Shown in pieces: positions 9,986 to 62,459 of a stretch of DNA of 64,000 nucleotides; position 1 is the stretch's first letter, and every line of letters starts with the position of its first letter. The notes beneath the pieces are model-generated. The model was not told the origin of the DNA. It saw nothing but the letters and a program-made list of their open reading frames with translations, and searched no databases. The stretch lies in IMG/VR virus record IMGVR_UViG_3300047322_001237, positions 1 through 64,000 of that record; one strand, given 5' to 3'. The position numbers were made by a program, and so were the translations under genes.

Positions 9986-10744
9986 TTACCAGTTCAGGTA
10001 GGCAGGCTTGCTACCGTTGTCCGACGCCCATCCGAGCGAGGTGAACAGCTCCTGAACGTTCAGGCGAACGGATTCCTGAGCGATGCCCTGTGCGGACGCA
10101 CGGTGCGCGCCTTCCAGGTGGCGGCGGGAGAACATCGATTCGGCGATCTCCTCGAGGGCGGGCGACTTGAACTTGTTGGCGATCGCAATGCCCGGTTCGT
10201 TCACGTAGTCCCACGTCACGATGTTCTTCAGCACGCGGTGCGTCGTGCGGCCGACCTGATCGTCACGCGTGAAGGCCCGGATCGAGAAGCAGACGTTCTC
10301 GTTCTTGTTCTCGAGCGAGCGACGCAGCGCGTCACCCTTCGGGCCGCTCGGGCAAACTTTACCGACGATCGCGATGCACTTGCGACCCTGCGGATCACGG
10401 ATGCGATCGAAGTCCAGCGTGATCTCCCTGATGTGGTGGGAGACGTCGCCTTCGTAGATCGACAGGATGCGTTGAGCGTACGAATCGTAGCTCTGGCCCG
10501 GCACCATCTTGGGATGGCCGTATTCACCGCGCAACGCGCCGTTGGCCACGCGTCGCATGAGCTGGCTGGAGCTCGTGAAAAGCTCCTTGGCGGGCTCGTA
10601 CGGATAGAACTGGTCGGCGGAGTTGTACACGTCCAGTCCGCCCAGCACCACCTCGTAGTAGCCGTCTTCGTCCGGTCGGAGATCACCGGCCTTGTTCGTG
10701 CCGTTGAGCGCCGTGAAACCGAAACGGATGTAGTTGTTACCCAT
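9986..10744 (-). CDS. Prohead (head maturation) protease, phiKZ gp175-like
   Basis: GEYGHP (His), FSIRA (Ser) and TWDYVNEPG motifs, plus synteny with the virion RNAP block. Confidence 0.9.
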   Translation of the reverse strand: MGNNYIRFGFTALNGTNKAGDLRPDEDGYYEVVLGGLDVYNSADQFYPYEPAKELFTSSSQLMRRVANGALRGEYGHPKMVPGQSYDSYAQRILSIYEGDVSHHIREITLDFDRIRDPQGRKCIAIVGKVCPSGPKGDALRRSLENKNENVCFSIRAFTRDDQVGRTTHRVLKNIVTWDYVNEPGIAIANKFKSPALEEIAESMFSRRHLEGAHRASAQGIAQESVRLNVQELFTSLGWASDNGSKPAYLNW

Positions 10745-51854: not shown

Positions 51855-54122
51855 ATGTCCACATCCACTCTTTCGTATCCGTTCGATCCGACGGGTTCGC
51901 TGGCATCGAACCTGATCAAGGGCGAGCAACAACAGCTGGTAGCTCAGAATTTTCGGGACCAGCATCTCATCATTCCGGCCGCCGCGCCGTTCTTCGCTGA
52001 CACCGTCCAGATCACGTATAAAGACACGTCGGGTCAGATCAGCACGCTTCACGAAGGCGTCGACTTTTACTTCACGCACTGGTTCATCTCCGCAAGCCGT
52101 GCTTGCGCGAAACGGGTGTATGGCTCGATCAGTTTCATCGACACCGCACTCGCCGGTATTGTATCCCTTCAATATCAGACGGTCGGTGGTGTCTGGACCC
52201 TGAGCGCGCAGCAGATCGCAACGCTGCTGGCGAACACGCTGGACAACGCACGCGTCACGTCGTGGGAAGAAATCAGCGGCACGCCTTATGCCTTCCCGCC
52301 CGAAGCGCATAGCTGGGACATCACCGATCTTGTCGGCATGACCGAAGTGGTCGATGCGCTTTCCGGCATCCAGACCGTTCTCCAGCAGACTGGCGGCACG
52401 GGTCTGGCCGCGCACATCGCGGACCACGGTAACCCGCACGTCGTGACCGCGACTCAAGTGGGTCTCGGCAAAGTCCAGAACTACGCGACAGCGGCGAACA
52501 GTGACGGGGTAGCGGGTACGTCGACCACCCTGTACATGACGCCAGCAACCACCGCTGCGGCAATCCAGTCGCAGGTGCTGGGTCCGATGAATTCGCACAT
52601 CGCGAACTACTCGAACCCCCACCACGTCACGGCTGCACAGGTGGGCTTGGGCAACGTTCAGAACTACGGCGTGGCCACACCTGCGGATGCTGCAGCTGGC
52701 GTCTCGACGTCGCTCTACATGACGCCTGCCACGACGATGGCTGCGATCAACAACTCGCTGGGCTCGTCACTCAACGCTCACTTGCTCGACTTCAACAACC
52801 CTCACGAAGTCAGCGCGGCACAGGTGGGTCTCGGCAACGTCCGCAACCTGTCGACGGCCACAACCGCCGATGCGATCGCTGGCACGAGCAACGATCTGTA
52901 CATGACGCCTGCCGCCACGGCCGCCGCCCTCAATGCGAGCGGGGCAATGGGTCTGATCACGGCGCACGAGGCGGATTTCACGAATCCGCACCACACGACC
53001 GCTGCTCAGGTCGGCGCTTATTCGAGTGCCCAGATCGATTCCATGTTGCTGGGCTATCTGACGACAACAGGCAAGGCCGCGGACACTTCGCTGTTCAACG
53101 GACTGACCCTGGCGCAAGTGACCTCGCAGATCCTGTCAGGCACGGCCAACAACGCGACCATGCTCGGCGGTATGACGCCCGCGCAGTTTCAGTCGTATGT
53201 GTCCGGCGGCACGGCGAACGACTCCGAAATGTTCGGTGGCATGTCGCCTGCCGACTGGGACACGTATATCGCGAACGCGACGGTGGCAAATGCGAATCTG
53301 GTCTATGGCCTCACGCAAGCGGCGCTCACCTCCGCAATCCTGTCTGGCACCGCCGCCAATGCGTTGGAACTCGGCGGTCAGAACGTCTCTCAGCTAACGG
53401 CCTCCATCCTCGCAGGCACGGCGGCGAATTCGACGCAGCTCAACGGGTTGACGCAGGCCCAGCTGACCTCGGCAATCCTTGCCGGAACGGCGGCGAATGC
53501 GACCGCTCTTGGCGGTCAGTCAGCATCGCAGCTGCAGGCAGCGACCATTGCGGCAAGCAACGCTCAGATGTGGACCGCGGGCACGGTCGCTGCACAAGAA
53601 TCGGTACCTTCGAACACGAGCGCGGCGGCGAACGTCTGGACGCCGATCGGCAAGCTGAATATGCCGGGCAGCGCGCAAACGCAGACGGTGTTTCCGGATG
53701 TTCAATGGCTCGTCGCCGGCGGCGATGCGACCAGCGATACCCAGAGCGGCGCCTGGTTCCTGCGAATCTCGGTGCGTGACACGACGCAGACCAACAACGT
53801 CGCGCTGCAGGCAATTAGCTTGAGTGGCATCAACGTGACCTCGGCTGTTTTTGGCTACACGATCGACAGCACGAACGCGAACGCACCGGTTCTGACGGTC
53901 TGGATGAAAACGCCGGGCCATACGAACCAGATCTCGGTGACTTCGCTCTCGGAAAACACCAGCCAGTTCCTCTCGACGATCGCGCAAGTCACGACGGAGC
54001 CGACCGGCATCGTCTACACGACGACAGACACGTTTGCCCTGGCTTCCGAGATGAGCAACATGCTCACGCAGTTGACCACTGCCTTCACCACGCTCGCCAA
54101 CGCGGTGAACGGTACCTCCTAA
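51855..54122 (+). CDS. Tail fibre protein 1
   Basis: YPFDPTG..ASN N-terminal attachment domain, NPHxVTAAQVGLG repeats, A.NA..L.G repeats and a beta-rich C-terminal domain. Confidence 0.8.
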   Translation: MSTSTLSYPFDPTGSLASNLIKGEQQQLVAQNFRDQHLIIPAAAPFFADTVQITYKDTSGQISTLHEGVDFYFTHWFISASRACAKRVYGSISFIDTALAGIVSLQYQTVGGVWTLSAQQIATLLANTLDNARVTSWEEISGTPYAFPPEAHSWDITDLVGMTEVVDALSGIQTVLQQTGGTGLAAHIADHGNPHVVTATQVGLGKVQNYATAANSDGVAGTSTTLYMTPATTAAAIQSQVLGPMNSHIANYSNPHHVTAAQVGLGNVQNYGVATPADAAAGVSTSLYMTPATTMAAINNSLGSSLNAHLLDFNNPHEVSAAQVGLGNVRNLSTATTADAIAGTSNDLYMTPAATAAALNASGAMGLITAHEADFTNPHHTTAAQVGAYSSAQIDSMLLGYLTTTGKAADTSLFNGLTLAQVTSQILSGTANNATMLGGMTPAQFQSYVSGGTANDSEMFGGMSPADWDTYIANATVANANLVYGLTQAALTSAILSGTAANALELGGQNVSQLTASILAGTAANSTQLNGLTQAQLTSAILAGTAANATALGGQSASQLQAATIAASNAQMWTAGTVAAQESVPSNTSAAANVWTPIGKLNMPGSAQTQTVFPDVQWLVAGGDATSDTQSGAWFLRISVRDTTQTNNVALQAISLSGINVTSAVFGYTIDSTNANAPVLTVWMKTPGHTNQISVTSLSENTSQFLSTIAQVTTEPTGIVYTTTDTFALASEMSNMLTQLTTAFTTLANAVNGTS
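52431..53010 (+). repeat. Coding tandem repeats (NPH motif)
   Basis: NPH codons at 52431, 52614, 52797 and 52983, periods 183, 183 and 186 bp. Confidence 0.85.
53090..53530 (+). repeat. Coding tandem repeats of about 24 aa (A.N...L.G.T..Q)
   Basis: ANNATMLGGMTPAQ, ANDSEMFGGMSPAD, ANANLVYGLTQAA, ANALELGGQNVSQ, ANSTQLNGLTQAQ, ANATALGGQSASQ. Confidence 0.8.
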
Positions 54123-54242
54123 CGACTTTCCCGACCCTCCTCAAGACCCACGTTAGGCGGCAGGTGCGCCCGGCGTGGGCTTGGGCATGGTCGCCGTATG
54201 TATTCAAGCCGGGCATTCGTGCTCTGGCCGGAGTCAACCCTT

Positions 54243-55649
54243 ATGTCTACGCCACCGCTTACGCTACCTTTGGACCCAACCGGTAGCGCAGCCAGCAATC
54301 TCATCACGGCTGAGGTCCAAACGATCGGAACGCGCGGCACGCGGGCGTTTCCGGTCAACTACGGTCTTTTTTTCCGGAAGTCTTTGGTCGTTAAAGACAC
54401 GACCACGAACAAGGTTCTCGTTCAGGGGACGCAGTACTACGCCACGCAGATGGACGTCGAAGCCTCGATGCGGTACGGACAGGAGATCGACGCGAGCATC
54501 GTCATCACCGATTCGACCGTGGGCTCGAGCGTCAGCGTCACGTACCAGGCGCTGGGTGGTGTCAACAGCATTTCGCAGGCTGCGGTGACCACAGCGGTCA
54601 CGGCTTTGCAGATCGACGACGCGCCCGCAACCTGGGCGAGCATTACGAACAAGCCAAGCAAATACCCGGTCGCGCCTCACCAGCACATCGCTGATGACAT
54701 GTACGGCATGGAGTTTGTCGTTGTTGCATTGAATCGTCTCGGAAGCGCGATCCAGTTGGGGCAGGGTACAGCACAGGCTGAGTTGCAAGCATACGCCGAG
54801 GCGGTCATTCAGGAGCTCATCGGTCAGATCGCCGCTGCAAACGCGGCGCTCAACGCGCACACGACGAATTTTGGCAACCCGCACCAGGTGACGGCGCATC
54901 AGATCGGATCGTACACGACCGAGGAAACGACGGCGGCTCTTGCGACAGAGACTACGAACCGGACCAACGGCGACTCGTCGATCCAGAGTCAGCTCAATAC
55001 GCATACGGCCGATCACACCAATCCGCACAAGGTCACAACCGCGCAGCTCGGGGCATTCAGCGCGACGCAGTCAGATTCGGCGATGACGGCCATGCAGACC
55101 GCACTGCAAAGCACGATTACGGCGAACGAGACGACCCAGAACGCGCACATTGCGAACTACAGCAACCCTCACCAAGTCACCGCTGCGCAGATCGGGACGT
55201 GGACCACGGGACAGATTGCGAGCGCCGTGGCCTCCTCGCAAGCGACGTTGCAAACGCAGGTGACTGCATTCGAAAGCTCGCTCAACGCGCACACGTCGAA
55301 CAAAAGCAACCCGCACAGCGACACCGCGGCCAACATCGGAACGTGGACGTACACGACGATCCAGAACTCGATCGTGAGTCCATACACGTCGCACGTCAAC
55401 AATAAGAGCAATCCGCATGGGGTGACGATCGCGCAGCTCGGCACGTATGCCGCCACGGACATCAACAACAATATCGCCGCGTATTACGGGAATGTCGTGA
55501 ACGAAGTCAATGCGCTAAACGGCACGATCAACGCCCACGTCAGCAATCAGAACAACCCACACGGGGACAACGTGAACAACACCGGCGGTGCGTACACCGG
55601 CGCGTACCTGCAGAACCTTATCAACACCACGTTGCATTCCCCAGGTTGA
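54243..55649 (+). CDS. Tail fibre protein 2
   Basis: Start ATG 54243 (LPLDPTGSAASN), GGAG RBS, many NPH repeats. Confidence 0.8.
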   Translation: MSTPPLTLPLDPTGSAASNLITAEVQTIGTRGTRAFPVNYGLFFRKSLVVKDTTTNKVLVQGTQYYATQMDVEASMRYGQEIDASIVITDSTVGSSVSVTYQALGGVNSISQAAVTTAVTALQIDDAPATWASITNKPSKYPVAPHQHIADDMYGMEFVVVALNRLGSAIQLGQGTAQAELQAYAEAVIQELIGQIAAANAALNAHTTNFGNPHQVTAHQIGSYTTEETTAALATETTNRTNGDSSIQSQLNTHTADHTNPHKVTTAQLGAFSATQSDSAMTAMQTALQSTITANETTQNAHIANYSNPHQVTAAQIGTWTTGQIASAVASSQATLQTQVTAFESSLNAHTSNKSNPHSDTAANIGTWTYTTIQNSIVSPYTSHVNNKSNPHGVTIAQLGTYAATDINNNIAAYYGNVVNEVNALNGTINAHVSNQNNPHGDNVNNTGGAYTGAYLQNLINTTLHSPG

Positions 55650-55668
55650 TCGACGGAGTAAAGGAAAC

Positions 55669-57078
55669 ATGACACCGAATCTCTATCGGTATCCGCTGGA
55701 TAAGACCGGTCAAAGTAAGGATAACTACGTGACGGGCGACGCCCACGCGATCGGGACGGATCCAGTCAGAGCCATTGCGCCTAACTACGGCGCGTTCTTC
55801 GCAGCGTCGATGGAGATCGTCGACAGCTTCACCCAGAAGACGCTAGACGGCACGCAGTACGAATTCCAGTTTCTGCACGAAGGAGCATCGCGCCTGGTCG
55901 GGCAGGAGATCTACGGCGTCGTGGTGATTACCGACCCGACGGTGGGTCCGAATGTCGAGTTGAGCTATCAGGCGCTCGGTGGCGAATACAGTCGCCCGAT
56001 TGCAGCGATTGCGACTGAAGTCGCGACGTTGGCGAACGACAATCGGAGCGTGAAGTTCTCGAACATCACGGATCTGCCGGATACGTTCCCTCCCGTTTTG
56101 CATATGCATGCGGTGGGCGACACGTACAACTGGGACTACGTGGTAAGCGCGCTCGAGATGATTTTGAATGCGATGACGCTCATCAAGGCGTCCTCGTACG
56201 ACTCGACGCTGAACTACGTCGACCAGCAGGCCGCCCTTCGCAACGCAGACATCGCGAACTTGGCCCAGGCGCTCGCGGCACACATCGCGAACAAGAACAA
56301 TCCTCACCAGGTCACCCTCGCTCAGGTCGATGTGTGCTCGTCAACCCAAGTGAACGGCCTGATCGCAATCGAGGCAAGTGCTCGCACGGCCGGTGACGCG
56401 ACGCTGACGACGAACATCACGGCGCACGCGACCCGTACGGATAATCCGCATCAGGTGACCGCTGCGCAAGCAGGCGGTTACACCACGACGCAGGCCGACG
56501 CGAACCTGAACGCCATCACCACGGCGCTCAACGCGACGCTCACGACCGACGCGGCCGCGATGAGTGCGCACATCGCGAACAAGAACAACCCGCACCGGGT
56601 CACGCTCACGCAGATCAACGGACAGACGACGGCGCAGATCAATACCACGATCAGCAACGCGATGTCGCCTGTCACGACGCAGCTGAACGCTGATGAAGCG
56701 ACGATGAGCGCGCACATTGCGAACACGAGCAATCCGCACGGTGTGACGCTCACACAGATCAACGGGTGGGACAGCGCCAGTATCGGGAACGTCAATAGCG
56801 GTGTGGCGAGCCACATCGCCAGTACGAACAACCCGCACCAGGTGACGACGGCGCAAATCGGCACGCTCACCGCGACGCAGATCAACAACAACATCGCCAA
56901 CAACTTCACGACGCCTGCGCAGGTCTCGTACCTGAACCCACAGACGAACTGGATCAACAGTCACATCTACAACTACAGCAACCCCCACAACGTGACGGTC
57001 GCTCAGTTGGGTGGCTGGACGTACGCCCAATGGCAATCGGCCTTGGCAACGGCGGTCTACAACCTTTCGTATCACTAA
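55669..57078 (+). CDS. Tail fibre protein 3
   Basis: Start ATG 55669 (YPLDKTG), AAGGA RBS, many NPH repeats. Confidence 0.8.
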   Translation: MTPNLYRYPLDKTGQSKDNYVTGDAHAIGTDPVRAIAPNYGAFFAASMEIVDSFTQKTLDGTQYEFQFLHEGASRLVGQEIYGVVVITDPTVGPNVELSYQALGGEYSRPIAAIATEVATLANDNRSVKFSNITDLPDTFPPVLHMHAVGDTYNWDYVVSALEMILNAMTLIKASSYDSTLNYVDQQAALRNADIANLAQALAAHIANKNNPHQVTLAQVDVCSSTQVNGLIAIEASARTAGDATLTTNITAHATRTDNPHQVTAAQAGGYTTTQADANLNAITTALNATLTTDAAAMSAHIANKNNPHRVTLTQINGQTTAQINTTISNAMSPVTTQLNADEATMSAHIANTSNPHGVTLTQINGWDSASIGNVNSGVASHIASTNNPHQVTTAQIGTLTATQINNNIANNFTTPAQVSYLNPQTNWINSHIYNYSNPHNVTVAQLGGWTYAQWQSALATAVYNLSYH

Positions 57079-57105
57079 GCGGTGCTTGGTGGGAGGAAAT
57101 ACATC

Positions 57106-59628
57106 ATGTCAGAAGTCTTGACTTTGCCGCTGGATCCCACGGCTAAGGCACCGACCAATCACATTACGTCGGAGAACCACAGTATCGGATCCGGACTGAT
57201 TCGTGCGTTCGCGCCGGCCTATGGCGGCTTCTACGAATCGAGCCTGAAGATAACTGATGTCGCGACGGGCCGGCCCGTCACTGCATCGCAGTACTTCACC
57301 ACCGGGCTGATGGACCTCGCAACGACGAAGTATGGCACGCCGAACAACACCAATGTCGTGTCGCTCGTCGTCGTGACCGATGCGAGCGTGTCCGGCAACC
57401 TCGTGATCGAGTACCAGGCCCTGGGTGCTGGGTTTGCTACGCCCCAGACAGTGCTTGCATCCGAAGTCGACACGTTCGAACCGGCGACGCGTCCGTCGAC
57501 GTGGCCGTCGGTGGTTGACCGCACGGCCGATGTGCCGCCATCGCAAGCAATGCATGATGAGGGGCAGGCGGGTCTCATCACATTCGAGTATGTCGTGCAT
57601 GCCATCGACCGCATTGCACAACTCGCGATCATGGGCGACCCGCTCGCGCAGTCGCGCGTTCGTGCGTACGCCGACGCGATGGAGAACGGCGAACTTCAGA
57701 TCGTCTCAGGTCAGAACACATCACTCGCTGCGCACATCGCGAACCACAGCAACCCGCACCAGGTGACGTCCGCGCAGCTCGGCGCGATGACGGAGGCGCA
57801 GCAGGACGCAGCTATTCTTGTTGAGACGCAGGCACGACAGGCAGGGGATGTGAATGCCACGCAGACGTTGACCAGCCACACCTCCAACCAGAATAACCCG
57901 CACAACGTCACGCTGACCCAGGTGGGGATGTACTCAGTATCGCAGGCGAATGGGAAGATCAGTGCTGCCCAAACGAGCGTCAACGCGACCATCAGCGCGA
58001 ACGCGGCCGCGATGACCGCGCACCTGAACGATACCAACAATCCTCACCAGGTGACGGTCACCCAGTTAGGCACGGAAAGCGTATCGGCGATCCAAGCAGC
58101 GATCTCGGCTGCGGCAGCCACGGTGTCGAGCAGTGCTAGCAGTGCAAGTTCAACGCTGAGCACGCACGTGTCCAACACGAACAACCCCCACGCCGTCACC
58201 CCGGCGCAATTGGGTACGTGGACGTCGGCTGCGTTGACGACGTTGATGAACACGCTTAACAGCCATATCGCCAACAAGAGCAATCCGCATAACGTGACGA
58301 TCGGACAGCTAGGAGGGATGACGCAGGCGCAGTACTCCGCGGCCATCACCGCTGCGTCGAACTGGATGGCGGGAATCTTCAACTCGAATTCGTCGAGCAT
58401 CAACAACCATATCGGGAACTACAACAACCCGCATGGCGTTAATGCGCAAGCCCTCGGCGCGGTTGGACCGTGGAATAACCTCGGTGGCGATCTGGCCAAC
58501 GCGCAGGCTCAGATCAACGCAAGTGGTCACCAGGTCACGGAAACGGGCACGCAGTACTACAACATCAACTACTCCGGTGCGATGGCTGCCAACTTTGGAC
58601 GCCAGTTGGAGATTTGCTATGCGATCACGGATTCGGCGTATTGGCGACCCACCGGCGGTGACACTACCGTAACAGGAAGCTTCCCCTGGTTCAGCGCGCC
58701 CGGCGGGGCGCAACTCCAGGGCTTCTTCCGGTCGGGCAACATCATCACGATCATTGTTCTGAATGGCAGCCTGGACGGGATGGTGTTCCACTCGTCGCTT
58801 GGCGAGAATCTGGCCCTGTCCAACGATCGGTCGTATACGTTCATGCAAACGGGGGCCGGACTCTACACGGCATACTCCGCCGTCTCGAACGTCGGTCAGA
58901 CCGGCTCGCCGCGCAGCTACGCAGTAATCATTCAGGGCTGGCCGAGCCGCGGTCAACCACCGCTGTACTACGTTAACAATGCTGCGCCGCCGCCGGACAA
59001 CTCAGGTGGTGGTGGTGGCGATGTGTCAGTCTGCTGCTTCACGGCAGGCAGTCTGGTGCTCATGGCGGATCAGAGCTGGAAGCCGATCGAAACCGTCCGC
59101 AAGGGCGATTGGGTCATGGGTGCGACGGGACCGGAAGAAGTTCAGCGTCTCCACGTCTCCCGCCTGGGCCATCGTCACCTGATGGGGTTCGCCGGCGAGC
59201 GGTTGCGTTGGAGCGAGGAGCATTCGTTCTGGGCTCGCAAGGACGGCCGTCAGTGGTGGTGGTCAGCCAATCCTGCCATGTGGCGAAAGGAAGTCGAGCT
59301 CGGCGTGGTCAAGGGATTGAAGGATCTTTACAGCCACTTCGATGGAGACGTTGATTTCGCCCATCTCGACGGTTTCGTCAGACGCAAAGTTGAAGTGATG
59401 CCGTCGACGCCGGACACGCTGGTGTATCTTCCGGTGACGAAGGGATCCCCGATCATTGTGGATGGTTACGTGGTCGGAGCCTCAGTCAACGAGTTCATGT
59501 ACGACTATGCGTCGCTCGATTGGCTCGAGCACGTGCGCAGTCACAGGAAGGCTGCTGTCGGTCTGGAAAAGAAGTCGCGGGTACGTCGCTGGAAGGACGG
59601 CCTCAAACGCCTGCTCTGGATGAAGTAA
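57106..59628 (+). CDS. Tail fibre protein 4 with C-terminal Hint autoprocessing domain
   Basis: Start ATG 57106 (LPLDPTAK), NPH repeats, a beta-rich domain and PPP/GGGGG linker. Then CFTAGSLVLMAD (59035), SEEH and VYLPVTKGSPIIVDGYVV. Confidence 0.82.
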   Translation: MSEVLTLPLDPTAKAPTNHITSENHSIGSGLIRAFAPAYGGFYESSLKITDVATGRPVTASQYFTTGLMDLATTKYGTPNNTNVVSLVVVTDASVSGNLVIEYQALGAGFATPQTVLASEVDTFEPATRPSTWPSVVDRTADVPPSQAMHDEGQAGLITFEYVVHAIDRIAQLAIMGDPLAQSRVRAYADAMENGELQIVSGQNTSLAAHIANHSNPHQVTSAQLGAMTEAQQDAAILVETQARQAGDVNATQTLTSHTSNQNNPHNVTLTQVGMYSVSQANGKISAAQTSVNATISANAAAMTAHLNDTNNPHQVTVTQLGTESVSAIQAAISAAAATVSSSASSASSTLSTHVSNTNNPHAVTPAQLGTWTSAALTTLMNTLNSHIANKSNPHNVTIGQLGGMTQAQYSAAITAASNWMAGIFNSNSSSINNHIGNYNNPHGVNAQALGAVGPWNNLGGDLANAQAQINASGHQVTETGTQYYNINYSGAMAANFGRQLEICYAITDSAYWRPTGGDTTVTGSFPWFSAPGGAQLQGFFRSGNIITIIVLNGSLDGMVFHSSLGENLALSNDRSYTFMQTGAGLYTAYSAVSNVGQTGSPRSYAVIIQGWPSRGQPPLYYVNNAAPPPDNSGGGGGDVSVCCFTAGSLVLMADQSWKPIETVRKGDWVMGATGPEEVQRLHVSRLGHRHLMGFAGERLRWSEEHSFWARKDGRQWWWSANPAMWRKEVELGVVKGLKDLYSHFDGDVDFAHLDGFVRRKVEVMPSTPDTLVYLPVTKGSPIIVDGYVVGASVNEFMYDYASLDWLEHVRSHRKAAVGLEKKSRVRRWKDGLKRLLWMK

Positions 59629-59650
59629 GAGGGTGGTGAGCTACACGCGT

Positions 59651-59696
59651 ACGGCCGGGCGGGAAACCGCTCCGGCTTTATGCCGTGATTTCTATG
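59651..59696 (+). terminator. Hairpin-TTATGCCG element followed by a second TATG
   Basis: gccgggcgg-gaaa-ccgctccggc-tttatgccg, then tctatgaggg upstream of ORF 59746. Confidence 0.6.
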
Positions 59697-59745
59697 AGGG
59701 AAATACACAACGAACCCTCGTAACGCTCATCCATAAGGCCCTAGC

Positions 59746-60231
59746 ATGCCGACTCCCCTCTGCGACTACAGCAAGAAGTCCCAGGACATCATTCGGGACC
59801 TCATCTACGCGAGCAACGGTTTCATGTTGCCTGCGACCGGCGTGCTGTTTGGCAATCCAACTAGCACCACCCCGCTCGTTGCCGACGCCTATCAGCGCGA
59901 CACATTCGTCCGGTTGTCGATGGACCCGAACGTGTTTCCTCGTCGCTATCGCGGCTCCCGCACCTTCCTTTACAAGCGAATCGATCTGAGCACCTTGAAG
60001 GCGTCTGCATCAACGCCAACACCGATCCAGGTCATCAGCTTGCCGACGGACACGTACACCTTGCTCAACCAGATCAACGCCTACTATGGCCTGCAACTGG
60101 CACAGGCAGACGTGCAGAACATCACCTACGGATCTGTCAACGGTGCTGTCCTGGCGGCCGACGTTACCTCTCTTGCCTTTCAGGGATACCTCACACTGAA
60201 CCTTCAGTTGGCCACCCCTGTTCAGGCATAG
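59746..60231 (+). CDS. Small virion/fibre-associated structural protein
   Basis: 161 aa with the FLYKRIDLSTL (Y.R.DL) motif recurrent in phiKZ-like tail-associated proteins. Confidence 0.6.
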   Translation: MPTPLCDYSKKSQDIIRDLIYASNGFMLPATGVLFGNPTSTTPLVADAYQRDTFVRLSMDPNVFPRRYRGSRTFLYKRIDLSTLKASASTPTPIQVISLPTDTYTLLNQINAYYGLQLAQADVQNITYGSVNGAVLAADVTSLAFQGYLTLNLQLATPVQA

Positions 60232-60262: not shown

Positions 60263-60308
60263 ACGTCATAAAAGCCAGAGTGGACCCAGTCCACTCTGGC
60301 CTTATGTC
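60263..60308. terminator. CATA-hairpin-TATG element at convergent junction
   Basis: acgtcataaa-agccagagtggac-cca-gtccactctggc-cttatgtc. A second hairpin lies just before it (60232-60262). Confidence 0.7.
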
Positions 60309-60323
60309 CGTCACGGCATCCAT

Positions 60324-61313
60324 TCAGACGATATTCCCGCCTGTCGCGGATTGAGGGAAAATCGACGCGCTGACCTTCTGCGCACCAAAACTCGCCACAA
60401 CACTGCCTTGCTCGGCGGGGTTGGGCACTTGATAAAAGTGTCCCTCCAACTCAACAGGCGTGGTCGCAGCAGCGTTAGGATCGGCCATCGCTAGCACCTC
60501 TTCGCGGTTAGGAAAGCCCAGTCCTTCAGGCATCGGTACAAAGCGCGCACCCATCGAGAGTGCCGTCTGTTCGGCCTTCGACATGTTCGCATTCGGAGCA
60601 GGAAGTCCGCTCGATCCGTCCTCTGCGTTGGCGCCTGGCTCCGGAGCGAGTCGCGCAAAACGGTTCTTCGCAAGGAACATGGTGTCGTAGAGCCCGCGCA
60701 GCTTGGCTTCTTCCTCTGCATCGCGCTCCCCGGTCTGCCGAAGGATCCACTCCTCAGCCTCGAACGGAAACGGCGGTAAGTCCGACAGGTCCGACACTCG
60801 CTTCCGCACTTCAAGATCAATCTTGACCCATGGGAAGAACGTACCATCAGGTTTCAGGAAGAAGTCCACTTCCCACTTCAGTCCCTTGCCAAGCCCTGCC
60901 GGAACTGCGCCGTCGTCGATCACGTACTCGTAGCGGTTCTTGACCATTCCACGATCCGAGAGGACACGAAACTGTTCGAAGTTGTCTTCCGTGGTCGGCA
61001 CGGCCACTTCGGTGTTGCTGCCGTCGGGCTTCCGCACCTTTGTCGTGATCACATACTCGGGAGCAACTTTGCCGCGGATGTTGATGAGCTGCGTTTTCCG
61101 GATGCGGATGCCGCCTTGTCCACCGTTTTGATCGGTCTTCGGGATCTTGAATTCCCACTGCTCCTGATGCTCCGAAAAGCCCCAGCCAGTCGGCACCTTG
61201 ACGGGTTCCGGGAGACGAGCATAGAAAACGTATTCGATTTCCTCGAATGCCTCGCCAGTTGCCTGTTCTTCAAGCGCCACGTCTTCCAGCGCCCGTTTCA
61301 TTAAGCTTGTCAT
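60324..61313 (-). CDS. CYTH-like (triphosphate tunnel) domain protein, possibly head-packaged
   Basis: EIEYVF, IRIRK, YVITTK, KNRY, WEVDFF and KIDLEV follow the CYTH motif order. N-terminal RALE and VALE sites. Confidence 0.65.
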   Translation of the reverse strand: MTSLMKRALEDVALEEQATGEAFEEIEYVFYARLPEPVKVPTGWGFSEHQEQWEFKIPKTDQNGGQGGIRIRKTQLINIRGKVAPEYVITTKVRKPDGSNTEVAVPTTEDNFEQFRVLSDRGMVKNRYEYVIDDGAVPAGLGKGLKWEVDFFLKPDGTFFPWVKIDLEVRKRVSDLSDLPPFPFEAEEWILRQTGERDAEEEAKLRGLYDTMFLAKNRFARLAPEPGANAEDGSSGLPAPNANMSKAEQTALSMGARFVPMPEGLGFPNREEVLAMADPNAAATTPVELEGHFYQVPNPAEQGSVVASFGAQKVSASIFPQSATGGNIV

Positions 61314-61318
61314 GATTC

Positions 61319-61579
61319 TTATTCGGCCTCGAGAAAGAGCGTGACGATTTCCTTGGCCATGTCCAAAAGGTTGTGAAGGCAGGCGCCCGCGGTGATGACG
61401 CCCATGTGCACCGCAGTGGTGAGCACCGCACCGAGCAGCACGGCGACCATGAAGGCAAGGAGAACGCCAGCCAGAATGTAGACTTGCGTCTGCAGGCTGC
61501 GCGTCTCCCGTGTCAGCTCCTTCGTGTCATGCTCGGCGATCGGATCTTGATCTTTGTCCGCGTCGAGATGCTCGCTCAT
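61319..61579 (-). CDS. Candidate holin
   Basis: Start ATG 61579 (1-bp TGATG overlap with the o-spanin stop). 86 aa, acidic N-terminus, long hydrophobic stretch. Confidence 0.5.
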   Translation of the reverse strand: MSEHLDADKDQDPIAEHDTKELTRETRSLQTQVYILAGVLLAFMVAVLLGAVLTTAVHMGVITAGACLHNLLDMAKEIVTLFLEAE

Positions 61580-61923
61580 CACTTCGCTCCCGCGGGCGCG
61601 CTTGCTGCGTTGGCCTTGGCGACGAGCGCTTTCTGCTGCTTGTACCAGGTGCGAATTCCAGCCTTGTCCTGGTTGCAGCTGCCGAGGTTGTTCGTCTGCG
61701 CCTGATAGGCAGCCGAGAGCAACTGTTCCTTGGTCTCCGTGTCCGCTGCGGCGTAAACGTCTCGCTGCGGCGGAGGAGTAACAGGACAATCCGCCACCAG
61801 GATGGCGGGCAGCTCCGGAAGGAACGTCTGATAGCGTGTTTCCAAAGTCGGCTGGCTACCACATCCGGCAATCATTGCGGCAGCCACGACAGCTGCCAGA
61901 CAGCGAAGTCGTTTCATTTTCAT
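61579..61923 (-). CDS. o-spanin (Rz1-like lipoprotein)
   Basis: MKMKRLRCLAAVVAAAMIAGC lipobox, Pro-rich DCPVTPPP and helix with CNQDKAGIRTW. Confidence 0.8.
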   Translation of the reverse strand: MKMKRLRCLAAVVAAAMIAGCGSQPTLETRYQTFLPELPAILVADCPVTPPPQRDVYAAADTETKEQLLSAAYQAQTNNLGSCNQDKAGIRTWYKQQKALVAKANAASAPAGAK

Positions 61924-61961
61924 CCCCGAAAGGTCTTTGCTTCTATTCTTGTTAGTCCGTT

Positions 61962-62459
61962 CTAGACGGACGGATCGCTCGCGGGCGAAGTCGGAACCGC
62001 AGCGCATCCGGTTGTGGACGCCGGGACGTTGTTGCAATAGGTGTCCCAGAGGCTGTTCACACGGATGCGACTGATCGCATTGGATTCGGCTTGTGCTGCG
62101 CTGGCGGAAACGGGTTGACCTGCTACCGGCTCGTACTTCTTCTTGACGACTGCGATCTGAGCGTCCGCTTTGACGTCGACGGCGACCTGCGACGCCGCGG
62201 TCGCAGCCTTCGCCTGGACATCGTCGGTCACAACCTGGTCGTTGACCTTCTCGGATTTCTTGGCGACGTCGAGCTGGCCCTTGAGGTTGTCGTTGGCGGA
62301 CGTCAGGTCTTTGATCTGCTGCGTGGACTTGCCGGCCGCCTCAGTCAAGGACTTCACCTGGTGCGCCTCGTAGACACCAAAGGCGATCAGTCCCGCAACG
62401 ACGACAGCGATGGCGGTACCGATGATGGCGGTTGCGTATTCCTTCACTTGGTCAAGCAT
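61962..62459 (-). CDS. i-spanin (Rz-like)
   Basis: Single N-terminal TM helix, coiled coil and two C-terminal Cys, directly upstream of the lipoprotein. Confidence 0.78.
   Translation of the reverse strand: MLDQVKEYATAIIGTAIAVVVAGLIAFGVYEAHQVKSLTEAAGKSTQQIKDLTSANDNLKGQLDVAKKSEKVNDQVVTDDVQAKAATAASQVAVDVKADAQIAVVKKKYEPVAGQPVSASAAQAESNAISRIRVNSLWDTYCNNVPASTTGCAAVPTSPASDPSV

Follow-up and report, generated by a model that had tools for sequence, protein, structure and literature searches.

The DNA considered here is the first 64 kb (64,000 nucleotides, hereafter the window) of the IMG/VR virus record IMGVR_UViG_3300047322_001237, which is 278,988 bp long, has direct terminal repeats and is rated 100% complete. 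The phage is phiKZ-like: the window holds homologues of the phiKZ virion RNA-polymerase subunits gp178 and gp180, and of the giant tail lysin gp181, recognized from gene order and size. Toward the far end of the window lies the gene that is the subject of this work, and its product is probably a low-copy barrel enzyme that travels in the phage head. It occupies positions 60324-61313 on the minus strand, with the stop codon at 60324-60326, and according to the open reading frame list and its translation it encodes 329 residues, with a computed mass of 36.4 kDa. An earlier note on the same DNA, in which the strand was not stated, had proposed the product as a candidate packaged CYTH-like enzyme bearing cleavage sites of the prohead protease. 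The protein is assigned to phrog_14791 of PHROGs (E 3e-35), a family without annotated function, and 24 homologues are at hand, every one of them from jumbo-phage-sized contigs or phiKZ-like phages. A megablast of the gene region against phage records gave no match, and a sequence and profile search of the PDB with the protein returned only chance matches to chalcone synthase.

The database gene call begins at Met5 and gives 325 residues, so that the leader is shortened in the public prediction; the interval 61299-61313 (minus strand) covers the difference. Since the N-termini of the homologues read M-T/S-S-L-L-K, Met1 at 61313 is favored as the real start. Counted from this residue, the protein falls into three parts, all on the minus strand: a predicted leader or propeptide (residues 1-15, positions 61269-61313) with a short helix at residues 4-10, an eight-strand triphosphate-tunnel barrel with a C-terminal plug helix at residues 199-213 (residues 22-215, positions 60669-61250), and a C-terminal extension that varies between phages (residues 216-329, positions 60327-60668). 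As the earlier note had read it, the N-terminus contains ALE twice and AFE directly before EIEYVF; in the translation these are A8-L9-E10, A13-L14-E15 and A22-F23-E24, followed by E25-I-E27-Y-V29-F.

AlphaFold2 was run on an alignment of 24 sequences, and the structural statements made here rest on predicted models. In the core, residues 22-215, the predicted local distance difference test score (pLDDT) is mostly above 90, and the model consists of eight long strands (residues 26-169) with one internal and one C-terminal helix. For residues 1-15 the score falls below 50, and the C-terminal ∼100 residues are poorly ordered (35-65). When this model was compared with the PDB by Foldseek, the top matches were enzymes of the triphosphate tunnel metalloenzyme (TTM)/CYTH group throughout, with a probability of 1.00. 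VIA-align over residues 21-213 gave Z scores of 10.1 for AtTTM3, 9.2 for SaTTM, 8.9 for BH2851, 8.4 for NeuTTM, and 7.9 for YgiF. CYTH-fold cyclases (YpAC-IV and the plant "AC" TTMs) were found among the structural matches at Z 7-9, the Mediator barrels Med18 and Med20 at 7.6-8.0, and the RNA triphosphatases Cet1, mimivirus, and vaccinia at 5.4-6.0. On these models the protein has the CYTH/TTM tunnel fold, and its structural affinity is closer to the small-molecule TTMs (Z 8-10) than to the RNA triphosphatases (Z 5.4-6.2). The note had suggested fold prediction as a check on its CYTH-like assignment, and the outcome, a confident TTM barrel with TTM matches at Z ∼8-10, bears that assignment out.

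The family models of Pfam tell another part of the story. No Pfam match was obtained with the protein at E up to 1, CYTH (PF01928) included; when PF01928 was run against the 24 homologues, 2 reached E 0.024, which gives no usable CYTH match, and a search of the whole phage genome with the same model found nothing. By the threshold that Pfam itself sets for CYTH, the protein is not a member of the family, and its strand 1 does not carry the complete ExExK hallmark. A few members of its family have been automatically labeled "CYTH domain-containing". Taken on its structure, the protein resembles a TTM hydrolase and probably works like one.

What does the tunnel look like? The residues that line it in the model are E25, E27, R70, R72, K92, E102, K125, R127, E148, D150, K164, D166, and E168; they occupy same-phase positions of the predicted strands, and the elements RxR, K92, E102, KxR, ExD, and K-x-D-x-E are kept in 23-24 of the 24 sequences. 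In the structural alignment, model residue 25 pairs with residue 4 of NeuTTM, and because E25 stands opposite this residue, E25 and E27 can be equated with the hallmark ExE, with V29 in the place of the lysine. The pair E25-x-E27 is invariant. At the lysine position, the 22 homologues with an intact N-terminus have Val (20 sequences), Thr (one), or Glu (one), and never Lys, so that the replacement of the canonical ExExK lysine, already remarked upon from the single sequence, extends to the family. In TTMs, the acidic pairs of strands 1 and 8 form the metal site side by side. With strands 1 and 8 paired antiparallel, the invariant K164 of strand 8 would adjoin V29, and it may stand in for the lost lysine. 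Compared with the small-molecule TTMs (AtTTM3, SaTTM, NeuTTM, and YgiF; PF01928), the protein has in common the eight-strand tunnel, the plug helix, the ExE of strand 1, the RxR, K, and KxR elements, and the acidic pair of strand 8, with Z scores of 8-10 and a root-mean-square deviation of 3.3-3.8 Å over ∼150 residues. It differs from them in the Val that replaces the ExExK lysine, in one more invariant Lys, placed two residues ahead of the acidic pair of strand 8, and in its viral leader and predicted packaging in a capsid.

The same residues bear on the type of reaction. According to published signature rules (PMC8233210), class IV cyclases carry HFxxxxExExK, have a small residue instead of the central Arg of RxR, and have Ala at the second strand-8 Glu, while thiamine triphosphatases are marked by W/Y-x-R-x-R. 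All of the cyclase marks are absent here: T19-G20 stands at the HF position, R70 and R72 are kept, and the strand-8 pair is D166-L-E168. The thiamine triphosphatase motif is likewise lacking, the sequence being I68-R... within G-I-R-I-R, with no aromatic residue before RxR. With no HF, the central Arg kept, and both strand-8 acids kept, the signature is that of a hydrolase and not of a class IV cyclase, and the protein is most likely an active, metal-dependent triphosphohydrolase. The suggestion in the earlier note that the enzyme might make nucleotide signals is disfavored by these rules.

The N-terminal leader reads M-T-S-L-M-K-R-A-L-E, and it contains two candidate sites for the prohead protease, A8-L9-E10 and A13-L14-E15. 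The motif of this protease, (S/A/G)-X-E, has been defined for related phages (PMC10052503, PMC5694885). Its bare occurrence says little. The pattern [SAG]-x-E appears at 0.0118 per residue across the phage proteome, and the first 24 residues, which are rich in Ala and Glu, hold three sites against a mean of 1.25 in shuffled sequences (P = 0.078); the count by itself is not significant, and it is conservation that carries weight. Among the 22 homologues with an intact N-terminus, which are the basis of all the conservation counts given for this region, [A/S]-x-E-E at residues 13-16 is found in 21, and E15, E16, and G20 are found in every one. The third site, AFE-24, is not conserved and is replaced by F-H-E, K-K-E, or F-D-E in homologues. 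Most relatives begin M-x-S-L-L-K-L-A-L-E-E, and in the present protein and a few relatives the A-L-E element has been duplicated by an insertion of 5-13 residues. A suitable enzyme is encoded in the window: the head maturation (prohead) protease, homologous to phiKZ gp175 and proposed to carry out the processing, lies at 9986-10744 on the minus strand (tblastn, 36.6% identity over 246 residues, E 6e-33; phrog_3014, E 7e-78). The proposal of prohead-protease sites near the N-terminus is thus retained for the E15 site and given up for AFE-24: the cut is likely to fall after ALE-15, and perhaps also after ALE-10, as judged from the alignments. Trimming of the leader would leave a mature protein with a computed mass of ∼34.7 kDa.

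The leaders of two relatives deserve a separate remark. In RP12 ORF082 and RP31 ORF78, the element L-L-x-V-A-L-E is found 20-36 residues from the annotated start, and RP12 ORF082 is annotated as 10 residues longer than RP31 ORF78. The true starts or leaders of these two proteins may be misannotated, or they may be longer than in the Burkholderia-type phages.

A processed relative of the protein is found in the giant-phage literature under the name SPN3US gp225 (YP_009153519, phrog_7768), which is described as "head, low abundance", of unknown function, and is present in tailless heads (PMC10052503, Table 2). The prohead protease gp245 cuts it at ARE-24, and with the removal of an N-terminal propeptide of 24 residues its mass falls from 25.1 to 22.3 kDa (PMC10052503); A22-R23-E24 in its sequence agrees with the table of that paper. 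The Discussion of the same paper speaks of "20 and 24 residues in gp225 and gp45"; in the Results and in Table 2, ARE-24 belongs to gp225 and ASE-20 to gp45. Several comparisons tie gp225 to the protein described here. When the alignments of the two families were compared by hhalign, the probability was 88.5% (E 2.7e-6) over 168 columns, nearly the whole of both proteins; the profile of the TTM family has a single match in the whole SPN3US genome, and it falls inside gp225 (E 3.7e-4); and the present protein has a weak match to phrog_7768 (E 0.097). Modeled with AlphaFold2, the gp225 family (pLDDT 83.5) likewise adopts the TTM fold and matches the same neighbors in the PDB, with Z 10.5. Judged by these profile comparisons, gp225 is a remote homologue of the TTM family, though not of the same PHROG; the passages of PMC10052503 that were consulted give it no fold assignment.

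The likeness between the two proteins extends to details. Like the present protein, gp225 is without the ExExK lysine (Cys35 is found there), it carries W-V-K-x-[D/E]-L-E-V on strand 8, followed by P-F-x-x-E, and, besides the TTM fold, it has an A-x-E site within a disordered linker that immediately precedes strand 1. The differences are equally clear: the identity is ∼23%; gp225 has 219 residues without a C-terminal extension, versus 329 here; and its 24-residue propeptide has a longer helix and is not of the M-x-S-L-L-K-x-A-L-E type. A22, E24, and S25 are the same in all members of the gp225 family, and the cut site lies in the disordered linker between the N-terminal helix and strand 1. In the hhalign alignment, V-A-R-E-S of gp225 is paired, with moderate confidence, with V12-A13-L14-E15-E16, and because of this pairing the homologous cut is expected to fall after E15. 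In gp225 the counterpart of E15 in the alignment is cut away with the propeptide, so that the conserved Glu would be a determinant of processing and not a part of the enzyme.

Evidence that members of the family reside in virions comes from three phages. SPN3US has been dealt with above. The second is RP31, whose ORF78 is an orthologue (35.9% identity, E 8e-20) and was listed as "Unknown" among the proteins identified by LC-MS/MS in purified particles, with a predicted mass of 22.9 kDa, a band at 23 kDa, and 6 peptides (PMC5468394, Table S3). The third is Goslar, in which gp163 was detected in CsCl-purified virions with 47.8% coverage and 13 peptides, at ∼45 copies per virion (range 30-71), and was listed only as a hypothetical protein (bioRxiv 10.64898/2026.04.21.720040, Table S4). 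The computed mass of gp163 (locus Goslar_00163), 33,931 Da, matches the table entry YP_009820848.1. Goslar gp163, RP31 ORF78, RP12 ORF082, and RSL2 ORF085 all belong to phrog_14791, have 29-39% identity to the present protein over the barrel, and are all annotated as "hypothetical". The idea of a packaged protein, put forward in the earlier note, is well served by these detections in RP31, Goslar, and SPN3US. Packaging and cleavage are carried over to the present phage from relatives with 23-36% identity, the mapped cut coming from gp225 alone; these data were obtained by others, whereas the fold, the residue conservation, the protease gene, and the homology to gp225 were computed here. The paper on SURPRISE13, a further relative, is without proteomics. 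In full-text literature searches, no paper was found that links CYTH with a virion protein of these phages. What emerges is a TTM-fold protein with an altered hallmark motif that is probably carried in the capsid as a processed cargo, and a leader that is a candidate for its targeting.

Is the leader confined to this family? When the N-terminal pattern M-x-S-L-L-x-x-A-L-E was searched across the whole proteome of the phage, a single further protein was found, an acidic protein of 262 residues encoded outside the window (genome positions 269979-270767, plus strand). It begins M-S-L-L-K-A-A-L-E-G-E and is unrelated to the TTM family; in the phage genome, the pattern occurs at these two N-termini only. 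M-x-S-L-L-x-x-A-L-E-G recurs in 26 of its 26 homologues with a complete N-terminus and is followed there by 20-50 hypervariable residues, and in FLC9 a similar leader is found on both proteins. The 262-residue protein has no Pfam or PHROG match, and a pattern scan of IMG/VR gave no relatives. A relationship to the internal head protein gp53 of SPN3US was considered for it, and the two are not related. By its sequence, this protein may be a second cargo with a capsid-targeting leader.

A precedent is known from phage T4, in which the internal proteins and Alt carry a capsid targeting sequence of 10-20 residues that is removed by gp21 after Glu. The two situations have in common a short conserved N-terminal leader that ends in (hydrophobic/A)-x-E and recurs on otherwise unrelated proteins of one phage group, as well as a prohead protease of the same lineage; they differ in the sequence of the leader, and a targeting role is here a candidate only. 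Short propeptides resembling capsid targeting sequences have been discussed for giant phages by the authors of the SPN3US work (PMC5694885). By analogy, the ten-residue leader M-x-S-L-L-K-x-A-L-E is a candidate capsid-targeting signal.

A looser form of the N-terminal pattern gave mostly spurious matches across the proteome. One protein seen in this way has 421 residues and no PHROG match (genome positions 89110-90375, plus strand); it begins M-E-I-I-K-D-S-T-E-Y-L-A-L-E-S, a looser leader ending in A-L-E, and it is continued by Ser, which the SPN3US protease prefers at P1'. This protein, too, may be a substrate of the protease.

The C-terminal extension is the least constant part of the protein. 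It contains a module of ∼60 residues common only to the closest (Paraburkholderia-type) relatives, and it gave no Pfam or PHROG match; an Atlas feature and structure search of residues 236-329 returned nothing above noise. The tail has 114 residues in the present phage, ∼290 in RSL2, and ∼400, acidic, in FLC9, and there is none in RP12, RP31, and SPN3US. Such variable tails may serve for docking or as spacers.

The gene stands last in an operon of the minus strand that runs, in order, through a DUF7208 protein (a homologue of phiKZ gp139), a RuvC-like resolvase, an i-spanin, an o-spanin, a membrane protein of 86 residues, and the TTM gene. A cassette of lysis type (61319-62459) separates the RuvC and TTM genes; it is made up of the i-spanin (61962-62459), the overlapping o-spanin with its lipobox (∼61579-61902), and the 86-residue protein (∼61322-61579), which has one long hydrophobic segment and no family match, all on the minus strand. 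In phiKZ the slot of the 86-residue protein has gp142 as its counterpart, which carries the annotation of a structural protein of the virion. The order virion protein, RuvC, spanins, small open reading frame, and TTM gene is also found in RP12, RSL2, FLC9, and SURPRISE13; the Goslar gene is placed elsewhere, after an RNA polymerase beta-like gene and a helicase. In phiKZ, a profile search of the whole genome found no homologue of the TTM family. The protein in the syntenic slot, gp143, was tried as a counterpart and is unrelated (hhalign probability 0.1%). Because phiKZ has no homologue and gp143 is unrelated, the proteomics of phiKZ or 201phi2-1 cannot be transferred to the present protein.

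On its downstream side, the TTM gene converges on a plus-strand block of fibre-like genes. Between the convergent genes, a perfect 12-bp hairpin with a 3-nt loop can be read from the sequence (60274-60300), followed by TTTT on the minus strand; it is likely the terminator of the TTM gene, although a scan with the consensus terminator did not flag it, the T-run being short. The fibre-like genes are paralogous (51855-54122, 54198-55649, ∼55588-57078, and 57082-59628, plus strand), with phrog_2163 N-termini and N-N-P-H repeat units in common. Their run, which spans 51855-60231, ends with a small DUF7941 protein at its 3' side (59746-60231, plus strand), of a family proposed to form baseplate-anchored host-recognition filaments (2026 Goslar structure preprint). 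In the 848-residue member (57082-59628, plus strand), a weak match of Hint/intein type (PF05203, E 5.6e-5, under the cut-off) covers residues ∼652-690 and begins at Cys-Phe-Thr-Ala-Gly-Ser near the C-terminus; it could be a self-cleaving or intein-derived tail-fibre module.

Taken together, the data are best read, with a probability of roughly 60%, as describing a low-copy internal head protein with a TTM-barrel core, targeted by its leader, trimmed by the prohead protease, and likely acting as a triphosphohydrolase. For the present phage, we infer the cleavage, the targeting role of the leader, the catalysis, the ejection, and the substrate. The sequence of events might be as follows. The precursor would be made late, from the end of the operon that also encodes the phiKZ gp139-like virion protein, RuvC, the spanins, and the small membrane protein. 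Its short amphipathic leader would take it into the prohead in the style of T4 capsid targeting, and the gp175-type protease would then trim the leader after the Glu of A-x-E, most probably at A13-L14-E15 and perhaps at A8-L9-E10. The mature protein would stay in the DNA-filled head in tens of copies. Its barrel keeps both acidic metal motifs (E25/E27 and D166/E168) and all of the basic triphosphate-binding residues other than the ExExK lysine, for which K164 may substitute, and thus a predicted two-metal triphosphate site that is intact. By analogy with other internal head proteins of such phages, its ejection would probably accompany that of the DNA and virion RNA polymerase, and in the cell it would cleave a triphosphate-bearing substrate, be it an NTP or dNTP, inorganic tri- or polyphosphate, or the 5'-triphosphate ends of RNA. 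In this form, much of what the earlier note had envisaged is kept, namely the TTM fold, the gp175-type protease, and the packaging and cleavage reported for relatives, while the AFE-24 site is given up and the cyclase option disfavored; no evidence ties the protein to CBASS, Pycsar, or type III CRISPR signals.

A number of observations weigh against this reading. The virion data come from relatives; for RP31 ORF78, the observed 23 kDa versus 22.9 predicted neither shows nor excludes a loss of ∼2.5 kDa. The homology to gp225 has its own soft points, as the N-terminal stretch of the hhalign alignment is only moderately confident and the reverse search, with the gp225-family profile on the present phage genome, found no match. 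As for the leader, the second family is weakly matched in RP12 and RSL2, the RP12 relative being without the leader, and its presumed RP31 counterpart, assigned from gene order, is not in the RP31 virion list. The lack of a TTM gene in phiKZ indicates that its role is not essential to the phiKZ-like life cycle. Last, with the CYTH model of Pfam missing the protein and the hallmark Lys absent, the protein could be inactive.

This last point leads to the alternative of a packaged pseudoenzyme, a head-internal or ejection protein in which a TTM-derived barrel serves as a scaffold or as a binder of phosphate or nucleic acid, with no catalysis. The ExExK lysine has been lost in the phrog_14791 and gp225 families alike, Pfam does not recognize a CYTH domain, the non-enzymatic Med18/Med20 barrels score nearly as high as the enzymes (Z 7.6-8.0), and the C-terminal tails are long and variable, all of which would suit such a role. 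Nevertheless, both metal-binding acidic pairs and five basic residues of the tunnel are invariant across two families that are ∼23% identical, which is hard to explain without a triphosphate/metal site, and the invariant K164/K171 is placed where it could replace the lost Lys; a barrel devoid of activity is therefore considered rather unlikely. Another proposal is that the protein is a class IV (CyaB-like) adenylyl or nucleotidyl cyclase that makes a cyclic nucleotide signal after injection. It is favored by the CYTH-fold cyclases, which reach Z 7-9 in the structural comparison, but all three marks of a cyclase under the rules of PMC8233210 are lacking (HF does not stand four residues ahead of ExE, R70/R72 are kept, and E168 is kept instead of Ala), and this idea can hardly be credited.

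The remaining alternatives accept an active hydrolase and disagree on where it acts and on what. It might be a non-virion enzyme of the nucleotide pool, an NTP or dNTP triphosphatase of the infected cell, with its detection in virions incidental and its N-terminal motif structural. Iyer et al. (PMC7824862) described CYTH triphosphatases scattered in jumbo phages and proposed for them, together with MazG-like enzymes, a role in nucleotide degradation and the nucleotide pool, and the number of [SAG]-x-E sites would give no reason to object. Against this, family members occur in three independent virion proteomes, one of them from tailless heads with a mapped protease cut, and mature gp225 no longer contains the residue that pairs with E15, which hence lies outside the enzyme, so that a purely cellular role seems highly improbable. 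A specific version of the preferred reading makes the protein an RNA 5'-triphosphatase, the partner of the injected virion RNA polymerase, acting on early transcripts as in poxviruses. The family is packaged in heads that also hold the multisubunit polymerase, Cet1, the mimivirus enzyme, and vaccinia D1 are among the structural matches, and the Goslar gene follows the RNA polymerase beta-like gene and the helicase. The poxvirus capping enzyme D1 offers a parallel, as it too is a TTM barrel in a virion with a multisubunit viral RNA polymerase (Z 5.4-6.1). The structural similarity to D1 is, however, much weaker, the Cet1 branch as a whole scoring below the small-molecule TTMs, and no guanylyltransferase or methyltransferase partner, fused or neighboring, was identified. 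In bacteria, moreover, removal of the 5'-triphosphate normally destabilizes mRNA, and phiKZ, with the same polymerase strategy, is without the gene; an action on early transcripts is accordingly judged improbable.

Nucleus-forming jumbo phages inject proteins that act before phage gene expression, and most of this cargo has no assigned function. Here, three "hypothetical" virion proteins, SPN3US gp225, Goslar gp163, and RP31 ORF78, are tied with the present gene to one fold with a predicted metal/triphosphate site, and linking a packaged protein to the TTM fold offers an activity that can be assayed directly. For the enzymology of TTMs, it is of interest that the ExExK lysine has been lost and that a Lys on strand 8 may compensate for it. 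Should the leader be confirmed as a targeting signal, the selection of low-copy cargo would be explained, and foreign proteins could be loaded with its help into jumbo-phage heads in laboratory strains. The broadest proposal, and an unlikely one as it stands, is that TTM enzymes are loaded into capsids by a short, cleavable leader, which at least one other cargo family also carries, that they enter the cell by injection along with the genome and virion RNA polymerase, and that within the first minutes of infection they hydrolyze the 5' ends of early transcripts or a nucleotide or polyphosphate of host defence or stress. If true, the enzyme would be to these phages what the triphosphatase packaged in virions is to poxviruses, and chimalliviruses would have in the leader a portable tag for targeting to the capsid.

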